The position numbers and the translations under genes are program-made. The notes under the pieces are model-generated. The model worked only from the letters and a program-made list of their open reading frames with translations, was not told where the DNA came from and did no database searches. From contig MCFH01000057.1 in assembly GCA_002104945.1 (NCBI GenBank), positions 284,584 through 348,583 on the forward strand: a DNA stretch of 64,000 nt. The letters are read 5' to 3'. This document shows, one piece after another, positions 8,953 to 64,000 of the stretch. Positions within the stretch are counted from its first letter, which is position 1; the number at the start of each line of letters is the position of its first letter. The DNA is from Piromyces finnis finn (Eukaryota > Fungi > Neocallimastigomycota).

Positions 8953-9497
8953 ATTAGATTTAAATTTTATTTTTCTTTTCATTGTTTTACAATTTCATTT
9001 TTATAATTTTTTATTAGTAGTATTATTTTTTTATCATTTTTTTTATTAACATTTAAATAGGATATATTTATATAATATGTAATTATAAAAATATATCTAT
9101 AGTAAGCATAACTTTTTTTTTCTTTTCAATCAAAATATAAAAAATAGGATAATAATAATTTTAAATCATTTAAAACTATTTATTCCCTAAATTTATTATA
9201 ATATATATATACATTTTTTAATACGTTTATACTCATCTTTTCTTTAAAATTTAAATAAAATAAATATATTCAAATATAAAAATTGCATAATAATAATAAT
9301 AATAATAAATGATGAATAAATAGTATTGATAGCTATTAATAATTACACTATATTCTCATTTATTAATTGTTTATTCCATTAAATAAAATAAAAAAAAAAA
9401 AAAAAAAAAAAAAAGAGCCTATTATTATTGCTATATTTATATTTAATATAATATAAAAAAAAAACTAAATTTTTACTATTTATAATTTTATTATAAT

Positions 9498-10044
9498 TTT
9501 TTTTTTTTTTTTTTTTTTTTAACTTCCGAGTGCATTTCTCCCATCGATCAGAGTTAGCTCCAATGGTGGTTCTTAGAGAAACGTTGGCTCATTCCTATTG
9601 CTAGGTGGTTGTGACCCTCCTGGTCTGTCATACTGTTTCTTCAGCTTCGACGCTCACTTAATCCATGTACATTAGATGCATGTCGTTGTACGATATTTCA
9701 CAACTACAATGCTAAGCCTCTTATAGTCAATTTGATCACGTGTCAACCGCCCCCCAATGTTTACACTTAAATTGATTAAGGAATATTATGTGTTTTTGGC
9801 ATAGCCTAAGTCACCACTTATTAAGTTCTAATTTGGAATGTACCATGTACACTAGACCCTCTCAGGCCGGCTAGACGAGTGTTATTATCATAGTAGTAAA
9901 TTAGAAAGTTCATTTATACTTACCTGAATATCATAACCCAACCCATGGCAAACCCAGTGGGAAAATCCACAGGCACTGACATCTGCGGGGTCGAACCAGA
10001 AGCCTTATGTATGCTAAGGAAACGCCTTAACAACCAGGATAAAA
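9498..10044 (-). mobile_element. tRNA(Ala)-derived SINE, ~547 bp, with poly(A) tail and 14-bp target-site duplication
   Basis: GC-richer island. The minus-strand head reads ...CCTGGTTGTTAAGGCG TTTCC TTAGCAT ACATA AGGCT TCT GGTTCGACCCC: a degenerate A box, a tRNA-Ala(AGC)-type anticodon loop and a B box at exact tRNA spacing. 24-T run at 9497-9520 (poly(A) on minus). Identical AATTTTATTATAAT at 9484-9497 and 10045-10058. Confidence 0.85.
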
Positions 10045-10279
10045 ACTGGAACGAAATTTTATTATAATAACAAAATATTAGTGTTAATAATAGAGTTGTA
10101 GTTGCAGTGTAATAATATTAATATTAATATTAGTAGCAATATCAAAATTACTTTATATTTTTAAGTGGTAAAAAGGTAGTACAAATATTAAAAATAATTT
10201 GGTAAAAATTATTAAAAAAAAAAAAAAACTATAAATTTTGTATTACCATAAAATATTATATATAAATTTTCCTTTTTAA

Positions 10280-10393
10280 TTTATTTATTTATTCATTTAT
10301 TTATAAATTTATTATTTATTTATTTATTTATTCATTTATTTATAAATTTATTATTTATTTATTCATTTATTTATAAATTTATTATTTATTTGT

Positions 10394-10444
<51 letters not shown>

Positions 10445-10457
10445 TATATTTATATAT

Positions 10458-10496
<39 letters not shown>

Positions 10497-10527
10497 TTTT
10501 ACATTATTTATTTATTTATTTATTTGT

Positions 10528-10574
<47 letters not shown>

Positions 10575-10587
10575 TATATTTATATAT

Positions 10588-10618
<31 letters not shown>

Positions 10619-10631
10619 TATATTTATATAT

Positions 10632-10666
<35 letters not shown>

Positions 10667-10705
10667 GTTAGTTAGTTAGTTAGTTAGTTATTTATTTATT
10701 TATTA
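10280..10705. repeat. (TTTA)n microsatellite, preceded by a ~28-bp unit repeat and followed by (TTAG)n
   Basis: Directly visible; explains the spurious FIYL-repeat ORF at 10390-10671. Confidence 0.95.
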
Positions 10706-28018: not shown

Positions 28019-28426
28019 TTTTTCATTTCAATATCATTATATAATGGAATGATATTGAAATATCTTTGTTATTTTATTCTTTCTATTATTTACTTTTAGT
28101 TATCTTTGTTATTTTATTCCTTCTACTATTTACTTTTAGTTATTTGTTGTATTTTTAATGCAACTTTTGTTTTTAAGGCATTAAATGAATCTTTCTAAAG
28201 CCTGCAATGTGTGAATACACTTACAGAAATTTTAAATTTTTGGTCTTATCAACAGCAGAAAACTAAAATAAAAATAAAATATAAATAGATAAATAGATAG
28301 ATAGACAATACTATAATTTATTAAAGAATATTTCAAATAATAAAAATAAAATAATTAAAAATAAAAATTAAGAAATTGTTCTCAATTTCATTAGGCCTAT
28401 TAGTATATATCAAGTATAAAAAAAAT

Positions 28427-28498
28427 TGCCAACTGACGGAATTGAACCACCGACCTTCGCTTTACAAGAGCGACGCTCTACCACTAAGCCAAGCTGGC
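28427..28498 (-). tRNA. tRNA-Thr(UGU)
   Basis: 72-nt cloverleaf on the minus strand, identical to 54919-54990; anticodon arm TCGCT CT TGT AA AGCGA. Confidence 0.95.
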
Positions 28499-28504
28499 AA
28501 TAAA

Positions 28505-28597
28505 TGCTCATGGCGGGGGTCGAACCCGCGATCTTCGCGTTGCATAAGAGGATCACCCTTATAAGCACGACGCCTTAAACCTCTAGGCTACACGAGC
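28505..28597 (-). tRNA. tRNA-Ile(UAU) with 19-nt intron
   Basis: 93 nt, identical to 54820-54912; acceptor stem GCTCGTG/CATGAGC; anticodon CT TAT A followed by intron AGGGTGATCCTCTTATGCA. Confidence 0.92.
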
Positions 28598-31500
28598 ATC
28601 TTGTTGATTTCAATGTTAAGGAATGAACATAAATAGTTGAATTAGCTAGAATTTTAGGAATTAATGTGAAGATATTAACTGGATTTAAAACAAATTCAGA
28701 TAATATCTATAATTAATTAAACATAATAATTATAATTAAATAATTTCAATAATTATTTTAAAACACTTTTAAAAGTCACCTTTTAAATTTTGATTCAGTG
28801 AAAGGGTTATGATTTCAAAAATTTAATATCAATATACTATAACCCTTAACCAAAAATAAGCAAGTACGAAATAAGGTGTAACTCGCCAAAAACGATCGCT
28901 ACGGTGATGAAACTAGGTTTATTGGAAAGCTTAGGAAGAAAGCTACAATTTGGTACAATCGCGGTCCTTCTAACTGATCATTTAAGGAAGTTATGATCAT
29001 TTAAAGATTTTATTAGGTAAATTAAAATCAATATGATATCAAGTATGGATCATAAATATTTCTTATGACTTGATGAAATTAAAAATATATCAATAGGAAT
29101 TTTAGTTATATTAATTTAATTAATGATAACGATTGTTACTAAAAATAGAACTAGACCCATTTAGGTGTAACAGTTAATACCTATAAATTAAATAATCTTA
29201 ATTATTATAAAATAGGTTAACGGCAAGTTTTATTAGAAATAATTTTGAAAATAATAATTATTTAGTTATAACAAATATGTTATGGTAATATCAATTAATA
29301 ATGATGAATTATTAATTGAATAGTTTTTATAATTACTAATTAGGATCAACTGTTTAAATGATTAATCATATGTTTATTTTATTTTATGTCATGACAAACA
29401 AACAAACAAACAAACAAACAATCTTATTACTTATTTAATTATATTACTAATATATTACATGTAATACTTTATTCTTATTAATATCAATTTAATAATCTGA
29501 ACAAAGAATATAAAAGAGAATGAATTGAATTCGATTTTAATTCTTTGTAAAGATTATAGTTATAATCTTAATTATATAGTTACTTATAATATCATTTATA
29601 TTATTATTAAATAAATAAAAAAATTTATAAAAAGTTATTTTAAAGTAAATATAAATTTTTCATTTTTCATTTGGGAGTTTAAGGTGTTATTTTATAATTA
29701 AATTTAATTTCTTAAAAAACATTTTTACTATATAATTAATAACATTCTGACCTGGCCGCATAACCAAACCCAAAAACTTAACAATTAACCTTCAACTATT
29801 TATATTCCTTACTAGTGTTTAACTCTATTTTTAAAATATAAAAATTATAATATATAATTTTTATACATTTTTCTAGTAATTATTAATATTTTTATTATAT
29901 AGTTATATTATTTGTATATAGTTATTTAAGACCTTTATTATTAGTATTAGTATAATTACTTATAATATTTTATACTTATAAATTTTACAAAATTTTACTA
30001 TTAAAATAATTATAGGTATTTTATTATTATTTAAGGTTTATTTTATTAATTAACCTTATTGTATAATATTTTATAATTTGAAATTATGACATAGAATTTA
30101 ATTATAATTTTTACTAAAAGAGGCAACTGTTACACACAAAACAGAAGATACCTCGACAGAAAAATTATTATTTATGTCTAAAAAAGGGCATAATTAATTG
30201 AATAATATAATTTTATTATATGTCATAATTAAATATATAATATATGATATGCAAAAATGTTACACATATCATAAATTAAAATTTTATTAATTATAAATTA
30301 AAAAATTTTTCTATTCAAATATTAAGAGATTATTCATAATATATATTAAGGATTTAATTAATATATGTTACAGTGAATGATCCATATATTATGAATGAAA
30401 TCAATTTAAATCCTTAGCTATCCAAAACCATTAAATTTCAAATAATGGATAGTTGGAAAAAGTACGAGGATTTTTGAGAAAAAATTTTAAAAATTGAAAA
30501 ATCAAAAATAAATTAAATGAATAAAAATTAAAATTAAATAAATTTTTATTTTTATAACTATTCAAGTGTTTTGTGATATCTTATTTGAACCGTAGCATCA
30601 AAATTGGTTCCGATAATCTTTAATTTGATATCATAATTGGAACAACTTCAAGGGTTATCTCTTAATTATTAATTAACATCCATAATTATTCATATATTAT
30701 AACAACTAATATTATTTGCAAATTTTAAAAAACTGTAACATTAATCATTTTATAATAGAAAAGATTACAAAAATATTAATATCATATGATAGGAACTTTA
30801 CAGCTTGAAAAATTAAATCAAACATATTAAAACAATTATAAATTTATTTAATAAATAATTTTACTTGAGTTTGAAACTAGATTATCAGTTTTTTATTTCG
30901 GACAAAAAGAGAGTATATTTTTATGGACCAAATATTAAGTAAAATAAATGCAATATTAAAACTACAAAAATTAAATCAAAAAAGCACTTTCTCTAACATT
31001 CCAAAATAATTAATAATTAGTTTTCATTTTTAATAATAAATAATATATTTATCAGTGAGAATTTGTCCTCAATCTTTTTCAGAAGTCTAACAAATAATAT
31101 GCGTACATCATATAAATATATTATTTTATTATTAAAAATAAAAAACGTAATACTTAAATTTAAATTATAAATTTAATATCTTTCTTTATTTTTATATATA
31201 TTTTAAAACTAAATTGTTTTTAATTGTATATTAATAAATACTATTAAAATTTTATTTTCTGTTTATTTTCTCTTTAGTTTTATTCCTTCTTGGCAACATA
31301 TTGACTACCACGAACAAAGAGAAATATTTCGTAATAGCTTCGATAGTGCCTTTCTCCAAATTTTCAGAAATAATATATTTATTATTTTATATTTTATAAT
31401 AAATTATTATTTCTTCTTTTTTATTACTTTCTTTTTCCTATGTTTTAAAATACTTTGAAACTAGATAAAAAAACTAGAGAGAATAAATAACATGGAAATA

Positions 31501-51716: not shown

Positions 51717-54257
51717 ATGGTTAACTTTACTATTGATGAAGTTCACGATCTTATGAAAAAGAAGCGTAACATTCGTAACATGAGTGTTATTGCTCACGTC
51801 GATCACGGTAAGTCCACCATTTCCGATTCCTTAGTTTCTAAGGCCGGTATTATTGCTTCTGAAAAGGCTGGTGACCAACGTTATATGGATACCCGTCCAG
51901 ATGAACAAATGCGTGGTATTACTATTAAGTCTACTGCCATTTCTATGTTCTTTGAAATGGAAGAAGAAAACCTTCACCTTGTCAAGGAAGAAACCGATGG
52001 TAAGGAATTCTTAATTAACCTTATCGATTCCCCAGGACACGTCGATTTCTCTTCTGAAGTTACTGCTGCCCTTCGTGTCACTGATGGTGCTCTCGTTGTC
52101 GTCGATTGTATTGAAGGTGTCTCTGTCCAAACTGAAACTGTTTTACGTCAAGCCCTTACTGAATACATTAAGCCAGTCGTTATCGTTAACAAGGTCGACC
52201 GTGCTCTTCTTGAATTACAACAAACTAAGGAAGATCTTTACCAATCCTTATGTAGAACTATTGAAAACCTTAACATTACCATTTCTACTTACCAATCTAA
52301 GGCTCTTGGTGATGTCCAAATTGTTCCAACTGAAGGTACTATTGCTTTCGGTTCCGGTCTTCAAGCCTGGGCTTTCACTCTTCTTGATATCTCTCGTCTT
52401 TACGCCAAGAAGTTCGGTATTCCAGTCGACAAGATGATGAAGAGACTTTGGGGTGACCACTACTTCAACCACCGTACTAAGAAGTGGACTACCAAGTCTG
52501 ATGATGGTAAGGGTGGACAACTCGAACGTGCTTTCTGTATGTTCGCTCTTGACCCAATCTACCGTCTCTTCGATACCATCATGAAGGGTGACAAGAAGCA
52601 AATCATGACTCTTGTTGACAAGCTCGGTATTCAACTTAAGTCTGATGAAGCTGGTCTTGAAGGTAAGCACCTCTTAAAGACTGTTATGAGAAAATTCCTT
52701 CCAGCCGCCGATGCTTTATTGGAAATGATGGTCATTCACTTACCATCTCCAGTCGTCGCTCAAAAGTACAGAGTTGACAACTTATACGAAGGTCCAGGTG
52801 ATGATGCTTGTGCCACCGCTATCCGTAACTGTGATCCAAACGGTCCACTTATGGTTTACGTCTCTAAGATGGTTCCAACTTCTGATAAGGGTCGTTTCTA
52901 CGCCTTCGGTCGTGTCTTCTCTGGTACCATCCGTGCCGGTCTTAAGGTCCGTATCCAAGGTCCAAACTACGTTCCAGGTAAGAAGGATGATCTCTTCGTT
53001 AAGAACGTTCAACGTACTGTTCTTATGATGGGTCGTACTGTCGAACCAATTGAAGATGTTCCATGTGGTAACCTTGTCGGTCTTGTCGGTCTTGACCAAT
53101 ACCTTCTCAAGTCTGGTACTCTTTCTACTGATGAAAACGCCTACAACCTTAGAGTCATGAAGTTCTCTGTCTCTCCAGTCGTCCAAGTTTCCGTTCGTCC
53201 AAAGAACCCATCTGACTTACCAAAGCTTGTCGAAGGTCTTAAGCGTCTTTCTAAGTCTGATCCATGTGTCCAAGTTACTACCAACGATGCTGGTGAACAC
53301 ATTGTTGCTGGTGCTGGTGAACTTCACTTAGAAATTTGTCTTAAGGATCTTGAAGAAGATCACGCTCAAATTCCAATTATTAAGATGGACCCAATCGTTA
53401 CCTACCGTGAAACCGTTACCACTGAATCCGACCGTGTCTGTCTTTCTAAGTCTCCAAACAAGCACAACCGTATCTTCATGAAGGCTCTTCCACTTGCTGA
53501 AGAACTCAGTAACGATATTGAAGCCGCCACTGAAGGTAAGTGCTCCCCACGTGATGATGTTAAGGTTCGTGCTCGTTACCTTGCTGAAACTTACGAATGG
53601 GATGTTATGGAAGCTCGTAAGATCTGGGCCTTCGCTCCAAACTCCAGCGGTCCAAACGTTCTTGTCGATTGTACCAAGGCTGTCCAATACCTTAATGAAA
53701 TTAAGGATTCTTGTATTGCCGGTTTCGAATGGGCCTCTAAGGAAGGTGTTCTCTGTGATGAAAACATGCGTGGTGTCCGTTTCAACATTTTAGATGTTAC
53801 CCTTCACGCTGATTCCATTCACCGTGGTGGTGGTCAAATTATCCCAACCCTCCGTCGTGTCTGTTACGCCTCCCAACTTACTGCTAAGCCAACTCTTCAA
53901 GAACCAATCTTCCTTTGTGAAATTACTTGTCCAGCTTCCGCTATGGGTGGTGTCTACACTGTCCTTAACCAACGTCGTGGTCGTGTCACTGATGATGAAG
54001 TTCGTCCAGGTACTGATATGCACGTCATTAAGGGTTACCTCCCAATTGCTGAATCCTTCGGTTTCACTGAATCCCTTCGTGCTGAAACTGGTGGTCAAGC
54101 CTTCCCTAACTGTCTCTTCGATCACTGGGAAGTCATGGAAGGTGAAATCGATTCTCCAAACGCCAACAAGTTACAAGAAATCGTTCGCTCCATCCGTAAG
54201 AGAAAGGGTCTTGCTGAAGAAGTTCCATCTCTTGATAAGTTCTTCGATAAGCTTTAA
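51717..54257 (+). CDS. EFT2: Translation elongation factor 2 (eEF2), intronless CDS with strong codon bias
   Basis: 846 aa. [60 protein letters not shown], and the diphthamide loop [17 protein letters not shown]. Confidence 0.97.
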
Positions 54258-54819: not shown

Positions 54820-54912
54820 GCTCGTGTAGCCTAGAGGTTTAAGGCGTCGTGCTTATAAGGGTGATCCTCTTATGCAACGCGAAGATCGCGGGTTCGACCC
54901 CCGCCATGAGCA
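54820..54912 (+). tRNA. tRNA-Ile(UAU) with 19-nt intron
   Basis: Cloverleaf GCTCGTG TA GCCT...AGGC G TCGTG CT TAT A[agggtgatcctcttatgca]A CGCGA AGATC GCGGG TTCGACC CCCGC CATGAGC A; 74 nt when spliced. Confidence 0.92.
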
Positions 54913-54918
54913 TTCATT

Positions 54919-54990
54919 GCCAGCTTGGCTTAGTGGTAGAGCGTCGCTCTTGTAAAGCGAAGGTCGGTGGTTCAATTCCGTCAGTTGGCA
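54919..54990 (+). tRNA. tRNA-Thr(UGU)
   Basis: 72-nt cloverleaf GCCAGCT...AGTTGGC A; anticodon TGT; 6 nt downstream of tRNA-Ile and followed by a T-rich terminator. Confidence 0.95.
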
Positions 54991-55048
54991 ATTATTTTAT
55001 TTTTATTTTATTATTTTTTTTTTTTTTTGTTTAAAAGGAATATCCCTA

Positions 55049-58000
55049 CCCTCTTACCCCCCTCTTGGAAACGTGCCTTCATTTATTTAATAAATGTAGT
55101 TTCTCAAGGGGGTCTACTCATGCTCATGGTACTGAGAGAGTAGGAAGAATTAAATCCAAGCATTGCGCAATGGATGCTTGGTTAGTCTTTAAGGGAAAAT
55201 TATTAGGACTAAGCTCATGGTACTGAGCGATTAAAAAACATTTATCCATCGAATTTAAGTATTTGATGAATAAGTTGAATGTTTGATATTCAGGTAAGTT
55301 TGTATAGTATTTAATTAGAAGAGTAATACATTTTGTTGCTGTATTTTTTCTTTTATTCATGTATTCATGTAGTACTACTCTTCTCTTGTAAGAATCCAAT
55401 GTAGTCAACTTTAGCATTTGCATTGTATTTTTATATTCATGTAGCTATTGTTGTATTGTTTCTTGTAAGAGACTGATTCACTCTACATCATGTAAAAATA
55501 CTATTCACAAGCTTTCTGGTGTCGACATTCTTGATTCAAATTTTTTACCAATTTAAATATTTAATGAAAAGTAAGTCAAACAAGTTTAGTGTCAAAAAGC
55601 GAATCGAATTTACTAACAACAAACCAAAACTAGAATTTTTAAAGAAAATTTACAACTAGAATTCAAAAAAAGAAACTTTAAACAAAGCATCGTAACAATT
55701 TTTGTACTATCCAGTACTTTTAAGAAGAGAGAGAGAGACAGATTTTTTTTCCATATACGTTATATTTATAATTTTTATTAGTATTTATTTTATATTCAAT
55801 ATTTTTAATTAGAATTTATTATCATGTCAGTCCTTTATATTAAAGTCAAGAATTATATCAGACGTGGTACCCGGTCTTATGGTATCCCCTTAGATGATAT
55901 TCGCTCCTTCTTTATCCGTGGTATTCGATCATGGTCAGTAAATATGCTATGGGAAAAACTCGAGGTTATTCTAGAAGATAAATTTAATTCAGTTATTAGT
56001 GTTAAATATTTTCAGACTTTCAATGATCACTTTTTCTTAGTCAAGGTTCATGGTTCATCGAAAGATTGTATTAAAATCTTACACATGTTAAAGAAGAAAC
56101 TTTCAGTTACCTCAATTTCCTTTTCAGCTCGTAGTAGAAGGAATCACAAATACACTTTTTCCACTCTCAAACGTAAAATTTTAGTTTCTAATAAACATCA
56201 ACATTCTATTCAACAATCATTTCAACAATCAGTTCAACAATCTCATCAACAATCCGATCTTCAACTAGATCTTCAACAAGATCTTCAACAAGTTTCCAAT
56301 CATGAAAATATTCCAGATCTACAGCAAACACAATTTCAATCTCAACATTCAACAATTAATTCTAATAGCTCTATCAACTCTGATAACAGTTCAATAGTTG
56401 ATAGTTCTTCAGTTTCACAGCCATCTAGTAATAGTTCTACTTATTCCTCTGATGCATCATCCATTAATAACGATGACTTTAATAATAATAATAATAGCAA
56501 CGATTCTTCCTCATCCAACAAGCCTGATAACTTTTCTTTTTGTCTTAGTTGGAACACCAATGGGTGGAATCACGAAAAGAGAGATAGTATTAGCTATTTC
56601 ACAGCTATTTTCAAACCATTATTTTTATGTTTCCAAGAAACTGGTAATGGTTCTGGATCGAATACAGATTATCCTTGTCGTGTTACTTTGCGAAACTATA
56701 GACACTTTTTCAAGAAAGCTGACGAATCAGTTCCGGGAATGAGAGGTTTATATTTAGGTTTTCACAATTCATGTCAAGCCTCACTTGAAAACTTCTCTGG
56801 AAAGTATATTATTTCTATTTATACTTTTAGTCTCTGGAATAGATTCAAATGCTCGATTGGTAATGTTTATATGCCTCATAGTCATCACAACATCTATGTT
56901 GATCATGCAAAGTTAGAAGTTCGCTTGTGGTTACAAACTCATTCATCCCATCCATCGATTCTTGTTGGTGATTTTAATATGTCTAAAGTAAAATTATCCA
57001 ACTGGTTATCAACTAATGGATTAGGAGATTGGGAAATTCTTCCGCTTAGAGGGTCTACTATCTCTTGGACTCGAGGTGATCAATCTTCCGACATTGACCA
57101 TGCTCTTATCAATTCGAAGATGAAAGATCTTATTCACTCAGGATCATTTATAAATAATTTTTATCCTGTATCAGACCATAAGCCACTTCTTATTAATGGT
57201 AAAATTATTCCTATGGAAGATTTTTCTAATGACTTTAATGTTCCTAAGAAAATTCTGAAATGGAATAGATTAAAATGTATTGAGGAAAAGGAATCTATTC
57301 TCAGTCATAATAAATTCCAAATACTTTCAGCTAAATCCAACGATCCTAATGTTTCTACAGATGAACTTTCCAAAGAGTTTACTTCAACTGCTTTTTCAAT
57401 TGCAGACGAGCTCAGTATTACTTCAGCAAATAATGTTATAAAGTCTTCATTTCATATTTCACAACAAATTTTTAATCTTCAAAAAATCAAAATGAAGTTG
57501 TATAAGAGATTTAAAAAAGAAAGAATTTATGATATAGATGAATTTATTAAAAGAATTAAAATCTACCGTAAACTCATTGATTACATCCACAAAAGATGTA
57601 ATGAATTTAGGAAGCAAGAATATCTTCATTGGATTAAAACAGGATGTGAGTATATGAAGAGTCATAATCCTAAGAAGGCCTGGAAATGGATCAAGAAAAC
57701 TGCAAAAATTGGAAAAGATTCTTTCTTTATTGCTCAACCAATTAAAAATAAAAATGGAGAATTAGTTGTTGCTACGGAAGAACAACTAGATGTGTGGCAT
57801 GATCATTTCGAAAAGCTTGCATCAGATCCAAGTGGTGTAAGTCTTGATTTAGAGCATTGGTATGAAGAACCAATGAATAAACGTTTTTCACTTCCTATGC
57901 TTGATGAATGGGATATCAACCAAGATATTAGTATTGATGAAGTCAAGTCAGCTATCCTCACTACTCCAAATTATAAAGCATCAGGTCCGGATGGTATTCC

Positions 58001-60582
58001 AATTGAATTTTACAAAGCATTAGTTCCATCAAGTAATGATTCTAATAATGCTACAGATAATAATTCTTCTGGTAATACTACTTCAGATAATGATGCTCAT
58101 GGTTTAAATTTTATTCTTAAATTATTCAACCGTATTTGGGATGGAGATTTCCCCAACTCATGGAATGAATCCAGTATTGTTTCTATTCCTAAGAAGGGAG
58201 ATTTGACAGATTGTGATAACTATCGAGGTATATCACTTATCAATAATGGTATTAAGTTGATTTCCAAAATTGTCACCACTAGAATCTCAGAATATGGTTT
58301 AAAGAATAATTTCATTAGACCTGAACAATTTGGTTTTCGAAAAAAGGAAGAAAGTATTAGTCTTTTCATTTCAATCCAAGAAATATGCCGTAGACGTCAA
58401 TTAGATAATAAAGAGACATATTTGGCCTTTTTAGATCTCAGGAAAGCATACGATTCAGTCCCAATCGGTAATATTCTCCATAAATTAGATTGTTTAGGAA
58501 TCCGAGGTAAGAGTTTACAATTCATCAAAAATTTATATTTAACATCTAAGGCTAATGTCAAATTAGATGGACAATTCTCGAAATCTTTTGATGTGAAGAA
58601 AGGAGTCCGTCAAGGTTGCCCTCTTTCTCCTATTCTCTTTAATCTCTTTATTAATGATATATTTAGAGAGTGCGAAGATCTAGGAGTCAGTTTAGGTGAC
58701 ACTCGATGCTGTGGTGGACTTTTTGCAGATGATATAGTTATTTGTGCTCCAACAAGAGGATGCTTAAAAAAGATGCTTAGAAGAGTTAATGAATGGGCAT
58801 TGTATAATGAAATGGAATTTGGTATCCAGAAATGTTCAACGATGGTGATTCGTCCTGAATCAATAGAAAATCAGAACAAGAGAGATCCAACATTTTACTT
58901 AGCAGGACAACCCATTCCAACTACTGATTGTTATACTTATCTTGGTGTTCCATTTGATAAGAATTTGTCCCTTAAACCAGTAATTAAAGCTCTTAATAAC
59001 AAGGTTTTGAAAGGGCTTTTCTCAGTCAGTAAATTCTTAAGAAATCCTAATATTCCTATTCCTTTCAAAAAACTAGTACTTAACTCACAAGTGATTAGCA
59101 GAGTTTCATACTTTGCACCATTACTTGGATCCAACAAAGCTAGGTCTAGGATTGCTCAGAAGCATGTTAACAAAGGAATACGATGGGTTGCCGGAGTTCA
59201 TAAAGCTGTATCGTTTATATCTTTATACTCTATTTCAAAAGATTTGAATATTCCTCCATTGTCAGCCAAATGTGCGTTAGCTCAGGTTAGATGTTTTAAC
59301 AAATGGAAAAACTCAAATTGTATTATCTCACACCTTGTCAATTACATTCCTAAATTTAGAAAATACACGTGGTGCAAATCAAGTAGGACACTTGATAAAA
59401 AACTAAAGAAACATGGAGATGTTAAAGCAGTTAAAAACTTTTATTGGAAAGATCTCAAAGGGAATTCAATCAAAGCGCAATATTATGATGATAATAAATT
59501 TAGTGAAACTAAAGATTTTATTAAATTATGTTATGAGTACCCAGAGTTTGCCTATGGCTTCTACTGGCTATTGAAAGCAAGAAGCGGATACAAGTTGGAT
59601 GCTAGAGTTGCCAAAGCTGCTAAATTTGTTGATCCAGTTTGTCCTAACTACTGTCCATGTTGCAAGTGTGGAGATCAAAGTATTAAACATTGGTTATTAG
59701 ATTGTCCAACATTTAGAGATATCCGTATTAAACATTATGATTCCATAGTCCAGCTATTAAATTTTTTCAGTCAACGTAATTCCAATAGTCCTATCAATAA
59801 TAATGAAATTGATAATATCAGTAGAGATAGTAATAACATTAATAGTAATAGTAACAATAGTAATAGTAACAATAGTAATAGTAACAATAGTAATAGTAAC
59901 AATAGTAATAATAACAATAATAGAAATAATAATATTAGTAATGATAGCAATAGTGAAGATAATAATTCTAATTTAGATAGTAATTTAGTTAATGATAGTA
60001 ATAGTTCTAATAATCCGGTGAATATTAATGTGTATGATTATTCTAGTGTGTGCAGTAAAATATTTAAATTCCTTCTTGGGGGAAGAAGTTTTAACAATAT
60101 TAATTACAATTCAAGGGAATGGAAAGAACTTTGTAAGCGTCAGATTCAATCTGGTACTAATGAAGGAGCACCATTCTTGACGGTAACCGCGGAACTTCTA
60201 ACCAAAATCATGCCTTTTGCTATTGGCCAGCAATGGTCAATGTTCAAAAGGTTTGAAGCAACATCCAAGAGCGTCAATGCTGAAGAAACAGTAAGACAGG
60301 CCAGGAGGGCCAGCGCAACCAATGGAGATCATAATTTTGTTCCATGACAAAATTTTGATCTTTGGCTCGGTGTCCCATTGGAAGTCAAATACAATTATTA
60401 TACTTTAGTATGATAGTGGCTTTCTTACTTTAATTAAAATTACTAGAATACATTATACCCAATTTTTATTCATTTGTGTTTATTTAAACATATTTTTTTT
60501 ATTTTTATTTTATTTTAATTTTTATATTTCATGTATTATAATTTTAATTAAATTAATAATAAAGTTTAAAATATTTGATGCC

Positions 60583-60639
<57 letters not shown>
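55049..60639 (+). mobile_element. Full-length non-LTR retrotransposon (LINE), copy 1: one 5' monomer, ~640-nt unique 5' UTR, single ORF, 3' UTR and 54-nt poly(A)
   Basis: ORF 55824-60347; AATAAA at 60558-60563; A-run at 60586-60639; CCCTCTTACCC at both 55049-55059 and 60640-60650 (candidate TSD). Confidence 0.95.
55824..60347 (+). CDS. LINE polyprotein, 1507 aa: RRM-like N-terminus, Q/S/N linker, APE endonuclease, reverse transcriptase, CCHC zinc finger
   Basis: APE motifs: SWNTNG, LCFQET, GDFN, TISWTR, SDIDHAL, SDHKPL. RT motifs: KASGPDGIP, YRGISL, QFGFR, FLDLRKAYDSV, GVRQGCPLSPILFNLFI, FADD, YTYLG. Zinc finger: CPCCKCGDQSIKHWLLDC. Confidence 0.96.
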   Translation: MSVLYIKVKNYIRRGTRSYGIPLDDIRSFFIRGIRSWSVNMLWEKLEVILEDKFNSVISVKYFQTFNDHFFLVKVHGSSKDCIKILHMLKKKLSVTSISFSARSRRNHKYTFSTLKRKILVSNKHQHSIQQSFQQSVQQSHQQSDLQLDLQQDLQQVSNHENIPDLQQTQFQSQHSTINSNSSINSDNSSIVDSSSVSQPSSNSSTYSSDASSINNDDFNNNNNSNDSSSSNKPDNFSFCLSWNTNGWNHEKRDSISYFTAIFKPLFLCFQETGNGSGSNTDYPCRVTLRNYRHFFKKADESVPGMRGLYLGFHNSCQASLENFSGKYIISIYTFSLWNRFKCSIGNVYMPHSHHNIYVDHAKLEVRLWLQTHSSHPSILVGDFNMSKVKLSNWLSTNGLGDWEILPLRGSTISWTRGDQSSDIDHALINSKMKDLIHSGSFINNFYPVSDHKPLLINGKIIPMEDFSNDFNVPKKILKWNRLKCIEEKESILSHNKFQILSAKSNDPNVSTDELSKEFTSTAFSIADELSITSANNVIKSSFHISQQIFNLQKIKMKLYKRFKKERIYDIDEFIKRIKIYRKLIDYIHKRCNEFRKQEYLHWIKTGCEYMKSHNPKKAWKWIKKTAKIGKDSFFIAQPIKNKNGELVVATEEQLDVWHDHFEKLASDPSGVSLDLEHWYEEPMNKRFSLPMLDEWDINQDISIDEVKSAILTTPNYKASGPDGIPIEFYKALVPSSNDSNNATDNNSSGNTTSDNDAHGLNFILKLFNRIWDGDFPNSWNESSIVSIPKKGDLTDCDNYRGISLINNGIKLISKIVTTRISEYGLKNNFIRPEQFGFRKKEESISLFISIQEICRRRQLDNKETYLAFLDLRKAYDSVPIGNILHKLDCLGIRGKSLQFIKNLYLTSKANVKLDGQFSKSFDVKKGVRQGCPLSPILFNLFINDIFRECEDLGVSLGDTRCCGGLFADDIVICAPTRGCLKKMLRRVNEWALYNEMEFGIQKCSTMVIRPESIENQNKRDPTFYLAGQPIPTTDCYTYLGVPFDKNLSLKPVIKALNNKVLKGLFSVSKFLRNPNIPIPFKKLVLNSQVISRVSYFAPLLGSNKARSRIAQKHVNKGIRWVAGVHKAVSFISLYSISKDLNIPPLSAKCALAQVRCFNKWKNSNCIISHLVNYIPKFRKYTWCKSSRTLDKKLKKHGDVKAVKNFYWKDLKGNSIKAQYYDDNKFSETKDFIKLCYEYPEFAYGFYWLLKARSGYKLDARVAKAAKFVDPVCPNYCPCCKCGDQSIKHWLLDCPTFRDIRIKHYDSIVQLLNFFSQRNSNSPINNNEIDNISRDSNNINSNSNNSNSNNSNSNNSNSNNSNNNNNRNNNISNDSNSEDNNSNLDSNLVNDSNSSNNPVNINVYDYSSVCSKIFKFLLGGRSFNNINYNSREWKELCKRQIQSGTNEGAPFLTVTAELLTKIMPFAIGQQWSMFKRFEATSKSVNAEETVRQARRASATNGDHNFVP

Positions 60640-60641
<2 letters not shown>

Positions 60642-60661
60642 CTCTTACCCTCTTGGGAAAT

Positions 60662-61334
60662 CCCTCTTGGGAACGTGCCTTCATTTATTTAATAAATGTA
60701 GTTTCTCAAGGGGGTCTACTCATGCTCATGGTACTGAGAGAGTAGAAAGAATTAAATCCAAGTATTGCGCAATGGATGCTTGGTGCCCTCTTAGGAACGT
60801 GCCTTCATTTATTTAATAATGGAGTTTATCAAGGGGGTCTACTCATGCTCATGGTACTGAGAGAGTAGAAAGAGCCCTCTTGGGAACGTGCCTTCATTTA
60901 TTTAATAAATGTAGTTTCTCAAGGGGGTCTACTCATGCTCATGGTACTGAGAGAGTAGAAAGAATTAAATCCAAGTATTGCGCAATGGATGCTTGGTGCC
61001 CTCTTAGGAATGTGCCTTCATTTATTTAATAAATGTAATTTCTCAAGGGGGTCTACTCATGCTCATGGTACTGAGAGAGTAGAAAGAGCCCTCTTGGGAA
61101 CGTGCCTTCATTTATTTAATAAATGTAGTTTCTCAAGGGGGTCTACTCATGCTCATGGTACTGAGAGAGTAGAAAGAATTAAATCCAAGTATTGCGCAAT
61201 GGATGCTTGGTGCCCTCTTAGGAATGTGCCTTCATTTATTTAATAAATGTAATTTCTCAAGGGGGTCTACTCATGCTCATGGTACTGAGAGAGTAGAAAG
61301 AATTAAATCCAAGCATTGCGCAATGGATGCTTGG
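60662..61334 (+). repeat. Six-unit tandem array of LINE 5' monomers (124, 89, 124, 90, 124, ~122 bp)
   Basis: Units start at 60662, 60786, 60875, 60999, 61089, 61213 (CCCTCTTRGGAA). Long units carry an extra ~34-bp module, ATTAAATCCAAGYATTGCGCAATGGATGCTTGGTG. Confidence 0.95.
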
Positions 61335-61980
61335 TTAGTCTTCAAGGGAAAATTATTAGGACTAAGCTCATGGTACTGAGCGATTAAAAAACATTTTATT
61401 CATCAAATTTAAGTATTTGATGAATAAGTGAATGTTTGATTTTTCAGGTAAGTTTGTATAGTATTTAATTAGAAGAGTAATACATTTTGTTGCTGTATTT
61501 TTTCTTTTATTCATGTATTCATGTAGTACTACTCTTCTCTTGTAAGAATCCAATGTAGTCAACTTTAGCATTTGCATTGTACTTTTATATTCATGTAGCT
61601 ATTGTTGTATTGTTTCTTGTAAGAGACTGATTCACTCTACATCATGTAAAAATACTATTCACAAGCTTTCTGGTGTCGACATTCTTGATTCAAATTTTTT
61701 ACCAATTTAAATATTTAATGAAAAGTAAAGTCAAACAAGTTTAGTGTCAAAAAGCGAATCGAATTTACTAACAACAAACCAAAACTAGAATTTTTAAAGA
61801 AAATTTACAACTAGAATTCAAAAAAAAAAGAAACTTTAAACAAAGCATCGTAACAATTTTTGTACTATCCAGTACTTTTAAGAAGAGAGAGAGAGACAGA
61901 TTTTTTTCCATATACGTTATATTTGTAATTTTTATTAGTATTTATTTTATATTCAATATTTTTAATTAGAATTAATTATC

Positions 61981-64000
61981 ATGTCAGTCCTTTATATTAA
62001 AGATAAGAATTATATCAGACGTGGTACCCGGTCTTATGGTATCCCCTTAGATGATATTCGCTCCTTCTTTATCCGTGGTATTCGATCATGGTCAGTAAAT
62101 ATGCTATGGGAAAAACTCGAGGTTATTCTAGAAGATAAATTTAATTCAGTTATTAGTGTTAAATATTTTCAAACTTTCAATGATCACTTTTTCTTAGTCA
62201 AGGTTCATGGTTCATCAAAAGATTGTATTAAAATCTTACACATGTTAAAGAAGAAACTTTCAGTTACCTCAATTTCCTTTTCAGCTCGTAGTAGAAGGAA
62301 TCACAAATACACTTTTTCCACTCTCAAACGTAAAATTTTAGTTTCTAATAAATATCAACATTCTATTCAACAATCATTTCAACAATCAGTTCAACAATCA
62401 GTTCAACAATCTCATCAACAATCCGATCTTCAACAAGATCTTCAACAGGATCTTCAACAAGTTTCCCATCATGAAAATATTCCAGATCTACAGCAAACAC
62501 AATTTCAATCTCAACATTCAACAATTAATTCTAATAGTTCTATCAACTCTGATAACAGTTCAATAGTTGATAGTTCTTCAGTTTCACAGCCATCTAGTAA
62601 TAGTTCTACTTATTCCTCTGATGCATCATCCATTAATAACGATGACTTTAATAATAATAATAATAGCAACGATTCTTCCTCATACAACAAGCCTGATAAC
62701 TTTTCTTTTTGTCTTAGTTGGAACACCAATGGGTGGAATCATGAAAAGAGAGATAGTATTAGCTATTTCACAGCTATTTTCAAACCATTATTCTTATGTT
62801 TCCAAGAAACTGGTAATGGTTCTAGATTGAATACAGATTATCCTTGTCGTGTTACTTTGCGAAACTATAGACACTTTTTCAAGAAAGCTGACGAATCAGT
62901 TCCGGGAATGAGAGGTTTATATTTAGGTTTTCACAATTCGTGTCAAGCCTCACTTGAAAACTTCTCTGGAAAGTATATTATTTCTATTTATACTTTTAGT
63001 CTCTGGAATAGATTCAAATGCTCGATTGGAAATGTTTATATGCCTCATAGTCATCACAACATCTATGTTGATCATGCAAAGTTAGAAGTTCGCTTGTGGT
63101 TACAAACTCATTCATCCCATCCATCGATTCTTGTTGGTGATTTTAATATGTCTAAAGTAAAATTATCCAACTGGTTATCAACTAATGGATTAGGAGATTG
63201 GGAAATTCTTCCGCTTAGAGGGTCTACTATCTCTTGGACTCGAGGTGATCAATCTTCCGACATTGACCATGCTCTTATCAATTCGAAGATGAAAGATCTT
63301 ATTCACTCAGGATCATTTATAAATAATTTTTATCCTGTATCAGACCATAAGCCACTTCTTATTAATGGTAAAATTATTCCTATGGATGATTTTTCTAATG
63401 ACTTTAATGTTCCTAAGAAAATTCTGAAATGGAATAGATTAAAATGTATTGAGGAAAAGGAATCTATTCTCAGTCATAATAAATTCCAAATACTTTCAGC
63501 AAAATCCAGCGATCCTAATGTTTCTACAGATGAACTTTCCAAAGAGTTTACTTCAACTGCTTTTTCAATTGCAGACGAGCTCAGTATTACTTCAGCAAAT
63601 AATGTTATAAAGTCTTCATTTCATATTTCACAACAAATTTTTAATCTTCAAAAAATCAAAATGAAGTTGTATAAGAGATTTAAAAAAGAAAGAATTTATG
63701 ATATAGATGAATTTATTAAAAGAATTAAAATCTACCGTAAACTCATTGATTACATCCACAAAAGATGTAATGAATTTAGGAAGCAAGAATATCTTCATTG
63801 GATTAAAACAGGATGTGAGTATATGAAGAGTCATAATCCTAAGAAGGCCTGGAAATGGATCAAGAAAACTGCAAAAATTGGAAAAGATTCCTTCTTTATT
63901 GCTCAACCAATTAAAAATAAAAATGGAGAATTAGTTGTTGCTACGGAAGAACAACTAGATGTGTGGCATGATCATTTCGAAAAGCTTGCATCAGATCCAA
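61981..64000 (+). CDS. LINE copy 2 polyprotein, N-terminal ~673 codons, apparently open to the window edge
   Basis: Same frame and sequence as copy 1 with few substitutions and one 12-bp in-frame insertion. No in-frame stop was seen at the differences checked. It is absent from the ORF track, probably because it has no stop inside the window. Confidence 0.85.
   Translation, partial: MSVLYIKDKNYIRRGTRSYGIPLDDIRSFFIRGIRSWSVNMLWEKLEVILEDKFNSVISVKYFQTFNDHFFLVKVHGSSKDCIKILHMLKKKLSVTSISFSARSRRNHKYTFSTLKRKILVSNKYQHSIQQSFQQSVQQSVQQSHQQSDLQQDLQQDLQQVSHHENIPDLQQTQFQSQHSTINSNSSINSDNSSIVDSSSVSQPSSNSSTYSSDASSINNDDFNNNNNSNDSSSYNKPDNFSFCLSWNTNGWNHEKRDSISYFTAIFKPLFLCFQETGNGSRLNTDYPCRVTLRNYRHFFKKADESVPGMRGLYLGFHNSCQASLENFSGKYIISIYTFSLWNRFKCSIGNVYMPHSHHNIYVDHAKLEVRLWLQTHSSHPSILVGDFNMSKVKLSNWLSTNGLGDWEILPLRGSTISWTRGDQSSDIDHALINSKMKDLIHSGSFINNFYPVSDHKPLLINGKIIPMDDFSNDFNVPKKILKWNRLKCIEEKESILSHNKFQILSAKSSDPNVSTDELSKEFTSTAFSIADELSITSANNVIKSSFHISQQIFNLQKIKMKLYKRFKKERIYDIDEFIKRIKIYRKLIDYIHKRCNEFRKQEYLHWIKTGCEYMKSHNPKKAWKWIKKTAKIGKDSFFIAQPIKNKNGELVVATEEQLDVWHDHFEKLASDP

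Follow-up and report, generated by a model that had tools for sequence, protein, structure and literature searches.

A double-hairpin RNA module in the ORF end of an L1-like LINE as a candidate recognition handle for an abundant SINE of anaerobic gut fungi

The window, i.e. the whole stretch of 64,000 nucleotides that was analysed (GC content 22%), contains one copy of a short interspersed element (SINE) and two copies of a long interspersed element (LINE). The SINE copy occupies positions 9498-10054 of the minus strand and measures 557 nt, including a 23-nt A-tail (9498-9520). Stops in all three frames make it non-coding, and it is flanked by identical 14-bp target-site duplications, ATTATAATAAAATT, which can be read directly on the minus strand upstream (10055-10068) and downstream (9484-9497) of the element. 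Its head carries a B-box-like sequence, GGTTCGACCCC (9984-9994, minus strand), which is a candidate Pol III promoter element. ARAGORN called no tRNA in this head, which may resemble tRNA-Ala, and a search of positions 9000-10600 against Rfam at E values up to 1 returned no known RNA family and no match to a tRNA model. Collectively, its short length, lack of coding capacity, high copy number, target-site duplication and A-rich 3' tail identify this element as a SINE.

The SINE is highly repeated and remarkably uniform. In one DNA run, 927 contig pieces match the copy of the window, 403 of them at 99% identity or above, and the summed k-mer depth of the element is very high. In three further organisms, RNA-library contigs contain it at about 99.8% identity. 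Only four of its sites have a variant share of at least 5%, and the variant at site 9755 is private to the window copy. Several contigs from the DNA run, in the region corresponding to 9868-9766, skip 66-216 nt of the body or swap about 90 nt of it, which suggests, from the contig sequences, that SINE subfamilies with internal deletions or exchanged middle parts exist. Positions 10390-10671, some 330 nt away from the SINE, consist of a long stretch of simple tandem repeats of the TTTATTTA type (FIYLFIYL in one reading frame).

The first LINE copy is full-length and lies on the plus strand at 55044-60639, its 5' end being approximate and located about 50 nt downstream of a tRNA-Thr gene. It contains an intact ORF of 1507 amino acids (55824-60347, plus strand) encoding a reverse transcriptase (residues 788-1043), a Cys/His motif, an Asn/Ser-rich linker and a conserved C-terminal domain. 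The reverse transcriptase domain matches the Pfam family RVT_1 (1.2e-35) and its best match in the PDB is human L1 ORF2p (E value 8e-33), with R2 at 2.5e-18. Among solved structures, the domain is thus nearest to L1 ORF2p. No Pfam match to an APE-type endonuclease was obtained in the ORF of the window at E values up to 0.01; relatives of this LINE have precomputed matches to PF03372 (APE-type endonuclease), some of them weak. The 3' UTR (60348-60585) comprises conserved blocks, GGAGTCAAATAYAATTATTATAC, TACTAGAATACATTATACC and TTAATTAATAAAG...TTTGCTGCCNTT, the last one followed by a 54-nt poly(A) (60586-60639, plus strand). These blocks are split by variable AT-rich filler and are common to the window LINE and to the related lineages L001, L002, L003, L005, L007 and L009. 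The 3' terminus of the element contains AATAAA.

A second LINE copy, 98% identical to the first one, follows head to tail on the plus strand (61213-64000) and ends at the edge of the window. Its 5' side (60641-61212, with the monomer repeats themselves at 60662-61211) consists of about five tandem units, in which 123-nt and 89-nt forms of the first ~123 nt of the element alternate, the single-copy equivalent in the first LINE being located at 55060-55182; these monomers resemble the promoter monomers of mouse L1. The tRNA-Thr(UGU) gene and an adjacent "tRNA-???" with a 2-nt anticodon called by ARAGORN are present twice in the window, in inverted orientation and 98% identical (54820-54991 and 28419-28598). 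LINEs are found only at the copy located at 54.9 kb, where they are stacked head to tail about 50 nt past the T-rich terminator. Immediately upstream of this tRNA-Thr/LINE stack lies an intact and intronless gene for elongation factor 2 (51717-54257, 846 amino acids), whose nearest structural cluster is chytrid-type. Stacked LINE tails are also seen in JGI metagenome contigs (L009-L016), in which 5'-truncated tails of different lineages succeed one another (e.g. L009:1750-1830 and 2140-2260). Some of these stacked tails are decayed copies of the motif described below, one with a deletion inside the module and another one with many C>T and G>A changes.

A previous sequence-only reading of this DNA had noticed that the SINE and the LINE share a 44-nt motif with 39 identical positions, and direct reading of both loci gives the same count. 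On the minus strand, the SINE copy of the motif (9655-9612) reads GAGCGTCGAAGCTGAAGAAACAGTATGACAGACCAGGAGGGTCA; on the plus strand, the LINE copy (60269-60312) reads GAGCGTCAATGCTGAAGAAACAGTAAGACAGGCCAGGAGGGCCA and lies inside the ORF, with the codons SVNAEETVRQARRA and 35 nt between the end of the module and the stop codon. The mismatches fall at motif positions 8, 10, 26, 32 and 42. Positions 32 and 42 form a G-C pair in the LINE and an A-U pair in the SINE, as had been proposed for a compensatory change in the second of two hairpins, and positions 8, 10 and 26 indeed belong to an internal loop or bulge; the change at position 10 additionally removes from the SINE one U-A pair present in the LINE. 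The SINE also has the TGA stop in the LINE frame that had been described (it reads SVEAEETV*), and the motif is internal in both elements, with 91 nt from its end to the SINE A-tail and 273 nt to the LINE poly(A).

With blastn, the match stretches a little further, to about 50 nt (9606-9655 against 60269-60321). Across the 64 kb, only the SINE and the LINE sites fit a degenerate pattern of the motif with up to 3 mismatches, for a chance expectation of 0.00, and a covariance model run with filters off scored the LINE at 84.3 bits, the SINE at 61.8 bits (E value 2e-17) and the next best site at 9.8 bits. This block, SINE nt 398-447, is the sole similarity of the SINE to the window LINE and to eight fetched relatives: blastn with word sizes of 7-9 found no further SINE/LINE similarity outside it, including between the SINE tail and the LINE 3' UTRs. 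Neither the 3' UTR blocks nor the hairpin over the LINE stop codon (see below) were detectable in the SINE by blastn, and the 91 nt that end the SINE look unrelated and include a long hairpin. Over the ~53-nt match, identity to the SINE is 85% for the window LINE and 79-81% for most other lineages; L004 likewise reaches 85%, over a shorter match of 40 nt. When DNA contigs of one organism (organism A) were placed on the SINE, depth was maximal over 9604-9647, and loose contig ends at 9615 and 9655 continued as LINE flanks, so that the boundaries of the shared block are marked independently. A pattern of the motif had no match in JGI metagenome contigs, which hence provided no extra SINE copies. 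In a global alignment of the SINE tail with the LINE segment after hairpin 2, the window LINE reached a z-score of 3.3 and the other lineages -0.6 to 2.4; from this weak alignment in a single comparison, a shared origin of the SINE 3' end and the LINE segment past hairpin 2 is possible.

Both 44-mers have the predicted double hairpin as their minimum-energy structure, with folding energies of -11.3 kcal/mol for the SINE (z-score -1.95) and -13.7 kcal/mol for the LINE (z-score -3.03). The fold was kept in three of four longer contexts, fully in an 84-nt LINE and a 145-nt SINE context; an 84-nt SINE context kept hairpin 2 only. In the SINE module (9612-9655, minus strand), which is delineated by direct reading, the minimum-energy fold and the covariance model, minimum-energy and consensus folds place hairpin 1, GUC..CUG-AAGAAA-CAG..GAC, at 9627-9651 and hairpin 2, GACC-AGGAG-GGUC, at 9613-9625. 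In the LINE module, likewise supported by direct reading, folds and the covariance model, hairpin 1 lies at 60273-60297 and hairpin 2, GGCC-AGGAG-GGCC, at 60299-60311 (plus strand). RNAalifold predicted exactly this structure de novo. In longer LINE contexts, it also proposed an alternative closing stem, GCGU/GCGC, which is able to enclose both hairpins and competes in the LINEs with the outer stem of hairpin 1 (GTC/GAC). This stem was rejected as part of the shared module, as it shows no covariation, is broken in the lineages L017, L020 and L022, and does not exist in the SINE, where its 3' strand is missing.

Selection on the module was examined in the LINE lineages. Seven LINE relatives, 58-64% identical over the C-terminal 113 residues, were fetched and their DNA obtained; their sources are metagenomes of gut and rumen as well as NCBI assemblies, the latter being presumably Piromyces and Anaeromyces genomes. 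In a codon alignment of eight LINE ORFs with 1203 usable columns, nucleotide identity is highest in the motif window (0.92) among all 1189 windows of 15 codons. Where amino acids agree, codon identity reaches 0.98 in the motif window, against 0.58 overall and about 0.62 in the reverse transcriptase core, the protein sequence of which is 95-100% identical in the same alignment. Synonymous sites are thus frozen in the motif, for which constraint on the protein cannot account. The motif has a GC content of 54.5%, against 32% in the surrounding ORF, where GC3 is 24%.

Hairpin 2 is GGCC/GGCC in the window LINE, L003 and L007, GACC/GGTC in L001, L005 and the SINE, GGAC/GTCC in L004, GGTC/GACC in L009 and ATCC/GGAT in L017. 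L002 retains a G.U pair (GGCC/GGCU), and L006 has one A.C mismatch (GACC/GGCC). On both arms the changes replace amino acids (Ala>Thr with Ala>Val, Ala>Asp with Ala>Ser, etc.): the peptide differs and the helix stays. In the outer stem of hairpin 1, a single compensatory change is seen, in L020, where Val>Ala and a synonymous AGA>AGG turn U-A into C-G, along with one U.U mismatch in L009; the inner stem of this hairpin is invariant across LINE lineages, with a fixed G.U pair, and its loop varies freely (AAGAAA, AUAACA, AUAUAA, AAAUAA, AAAAAA, AAAAUG). The G.U pairs, invariant in hairpin 1 and occurring as variants in hairpin 2, favor the sense RNA over the complementary strand as the structured molecule. 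In a set of 14 sequences, in which three decayed or divergent copies were included on purpose, 94% of the pairing cells are filled, against 18-45% when the 3' partner is slid by 1-3 columns. Double changes occur at four pairs, three of them among the four pairs of hairpin 2. None of 500 shuffles attained the covariation score and 12-14 of 500 attained the pair-based measures. In some divergent or decayed copies (L021, L022, L006), pairs are broken or the register of hairpin 2 is shifted. Covariation, on which the sequence-only reading had staked its proposal, is thus present among the LINE lineages, and the two hairpins are supported as a real, selected RNA structure in these LINEs by evidence extending far beyond the single compensatory pair initially noticed.

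The same pattern was sought in protein sequences. Searched against 1.84 billion representative proteins, a C-terminal domain profile gave 186 matches, among which 82 distinct fragments span the site; the arms of hairpin 2 encode residues X and Y of Q-X-S-R-Y. Arm residue pairs were A/A in 37 of these fragments, S/D in 6, V/T in 5, D/S in 3, T/V in 2 and P/G in 1; the wobble-compatible pairs V/A, I/V and V/I were also observed. Among the 23 pairs altered on both sides, 17 are Watson-Crick complementary at codon positions 1-2, and 20 if G.U is allowed. None of 10,000 shuffles equalled the observed pairable count, although such counts are inflated by relatedness. At least five different complementary pair types occur, and the V/T and S/D codons, deduced from protein, were verified on DNA (L009 and L017). 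A more distant group (P/A; L022) is without the same register, a shifted 3-bp helix being possible there. Protein constraint as the source of conservation in the LINE was rejected on this codon-complement evidence together with that from synonymous sites.

A third, long hairpin spans the LINE stop codon (60319-60381, plus strand), as judged from per-lineage minimum-energy folds, and is not found in the SINE by sequence. In the window LINE and in L001, L002, L003, L005 and L009, the stretch encoding ..T-N-G-D-H-N-F is base-paired to the opening ~40 nt of the 3' UTR. From lineage to lineage, the basal stems change in sequence and stay complementary (CCAAUGG/CCAUUGG, CCGUUG/CAACGG, CCAAUAA/UUAUUGG), and this predicted hairpin appears to be under selection too.

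In the SINE family, the motif has not been lost. Two motif variants reach at least 5%: G>A at position 8, in the internal loop, and A>G at position 32 (9624, a common subfamily), which forms a G.U pair with U42. Both correspond to the states found in the LINE and the fold is kept, so that the other copies gave no sign of the loss or free mutation of the motif that would have spoken against the earlier proposal. The position-32 variant suggests an intermediate on a path from G-C through G.U to A-U. Since the whole SINE is uniform and young, conservation of the motif within the SINE family is no separate evidence of selection; SINE copies were likewise dropped as covariation data, being too uniform with only four sites at 5% or more.

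Several observations link the SINE to the LINE family of the window. The loops AAGAAA and AGGAG of the SINE are found jointly only in this family, the loop of hairpin 2 being AGCAG, AGUAG or AGUAA in other lineages. As the SINE has the family-specific version of the module, the foremost candidate for its partner is the window LINE or one closely related to it. DNA and RNA runs of organism A that contain the SINE also contain the 3' end of the LINE, and the two occur in the same gut metagenomes as well. The two elements display a shared LINE-derived segment, a conserved stem-loop and a potentially active LINE with an intact ORF co-occurring with the SINE, as stringent partner pairs do; unlike in such pairs, the shared segment is not their 3' tail, as it is followed by 91 nt (SINE) or 273 nt (LINE) of unrelated sequence. 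The sequence-only reading had gone further, proposing the motif as the cis recognition element through which this LINE family or a close relative mobilises the SINE. This proposal gains from the selected RNA structure and the family-specific loops, and draws nothing separate from the SINE copies.

We regard it as rather probable that the LINE machinery recognises the module as a cis-acting RNA handle and that the SINE exploits it. According to this mechanism, an L1-like LINE clade of anaerobic gut fungi keeps a sense-strand module within the last ~27 codons of its ORF, where the LINE reverse transcriptase protein or RNP would recognise it on its own transcript. The young, very high-copy and poly(A)-tailed SINE would have taken the module from the window LINE family or a close relative. 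By offering the module and an A-tail, the SINE RNA would be loaded onto the LINE machinery, which would reverse-transcribe it at target sites, with 14-bp target-site duplications as the outcome. We infer that the LINE protein binds the module and that mobilisation needs it. Since the module is 3'-terminal in neither element and other LINE 3' features are absent from the SINE, it may be insufficient, or the true recognition domain may be larger. Both LINE copies adjoin a tRNA gene, just downstream of tRNA-Thr, and the SINE lies in plain AT-rich DNA; if the LINE is targeted to tRNA genes, a SINE copied by it would be expected near such genes too, and the partnership would need re-examination. 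The broader proposition, namely that an L1-like clade across gut fungi uses stringent recognition through a coding-embedded handle, in which codon-complementary residue pairs (A/A, T/V, D/S, V/T, S/D) keep a 4-bp helix, and that a thousand-copy SINE hijacks this handle and not the 3' tail, is in our view evenly poised.

The block might instead be a relic of the origin of the SINE, whose 3' part would once have come from the end of the LINE ORF, mobilisation now depending on the A-tail only in a relaxed, Alu-like manner, with hairpins not yet eroded. L1-clade LINEs generally recognise poly(A) and usually need nothing else, stringent L1 lineages being rare (monocots and a green alga) and L1 accounting for only 3 of 58 catalogued SINE/LINE tail pairs (PMC3472496). 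The uniformly young SINE copies have had no time for decay, 91 nt separate the module from the A-tail, and there is weak possible homology farther downstream (z-score of 3.3 in one comparison). However, the rest of the SINE has no detectable similarity to any of about 10 LINE lineages and the block is still 85-89% identical, which amounts to differential retention. In addition, both stem positions at which the SINE departs from the LINE change in a compensatory way, a common SINE subfamily carries the G.U intermediate, and within the LINE this block is under the strongest RNA constraint. We therefore consider a mere relic unlikely.

Another possibility is that the hairpins serve a different function of the LINE RNA, such as cis-preference through pausing of ribosomes or control of termination where the ORF ends, or the stability, export or LINE-RNP localisation of the RNA; the SINE would gain something or nothing from it. 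The location of the module in the last ORF codons, ahead of a third hairpin embedding the stop codon, is a layout suggestive of translation-coupled events, and the further conserved blocks of the LINE 3' UTR could be the true entry site of the reverse transcriptase. A role linked to translation cannot, however, explain retention in a SINE that is untranslated, with stops in all frames, and among the conserved LINE 3' features only the module was captured or kept by the SINE, which makes this explanation quite improbable. That protein constraint on the LINE C-terminal peptide accounts for the block, the SINE match being fortuitous or a dead-LINE fragment, is hardly credible: although the peptide KSVNAExTVRQxSRxSAT..DHNF is conserved across relatives, its synonymous sites are frozen (0.98 versus 0.58), its two most variable residues change as codon-complementary pairs, the SINE combines an in-frame stop with full SINE anatomy, a target-site duplication and no other LINE sequence, and the chance expectation in the window is 0.

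If true, the broader proposition above would represent a SINE/LINE recognition architecture new to description and the first SINE/LINE partnership in Neocallimastigomycota. A literature search on SINEs in Neocallimastigomycota, Piromyces or anaerobic fungi found nothing relevant, and the present case gives a first description of an abundant SINE for anaerobic gut fungi, a group of biotechnological interest with poorly annotated repeats. How LINE reverse transcriptases choose their templates is only partly understood, notably for the L1 clade, in which recognition of poly(A) is assumed to be the rule. The module offers a compact element of ~44 nt, backed by covariation and open to direct test by stem mutation and restoration, and a SINE retaining only this module out of the LINE constitutes a natural experiment. 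The LINE itself provides a clear case of an RNA structure imposing amino-acid covariation on a protein tail.

This organisation is reminiscent of the eel UnaL2/UnaSINE1 pair and of zebrafish ZfL2-type LINEs, in which the SINE also has a LINE-derived stem-loop, thought to be recognised by the partner LINE protein, and in which loops and stems are likewise specific to the partner family (PMC4176376). In contrast to the UnaL2/UnaSINE1 type, the block described here is internal, in the LINE ORF and 273 nt before the poly(A), with unrelated sequence after it in the SINE as in the LINE; poly(A), and not short tail repeats, terminates both elements, and the LINE is L1-like and not L2/CR1-like. Closer in clade are maize LINE1-1_ZM with ZmSINE2/3 and a green-alga pair, in which an L1-clade LINE has a conserved structured RNA element in common with a poly(A)-ending SINE (Ohshima, 2012; PMC3472496). 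These pairs are an exception to relaxed L1 recognition (PMC3472496). There, the shared element is the 3'-end sequence itself, whereas here it is embedded in coding sequence, upstream of a long 3' UTR, and found in an early-diverging fungus. LINE sequence in the middle of a SINE, and not at its end, has similarly been described in LINE-derived SINE bodies (Kojima, 2018; PMC5786205), but those derive only from the 5' regions of RTE and Vingi LINEs, while the piece described here is a small pair of covarying hairpins from the 3' ORF end of an L1-like LINE. Finally, the SINE shares with the relaxed Alu/L1 system an A-tail, a target-site duplication of ~14 bp at an AT-rich TT|A-type site and a very high copy number; unlike Alu, which has no L1-derived sequence, the SINE of the window carries sequence derived from a LINE.
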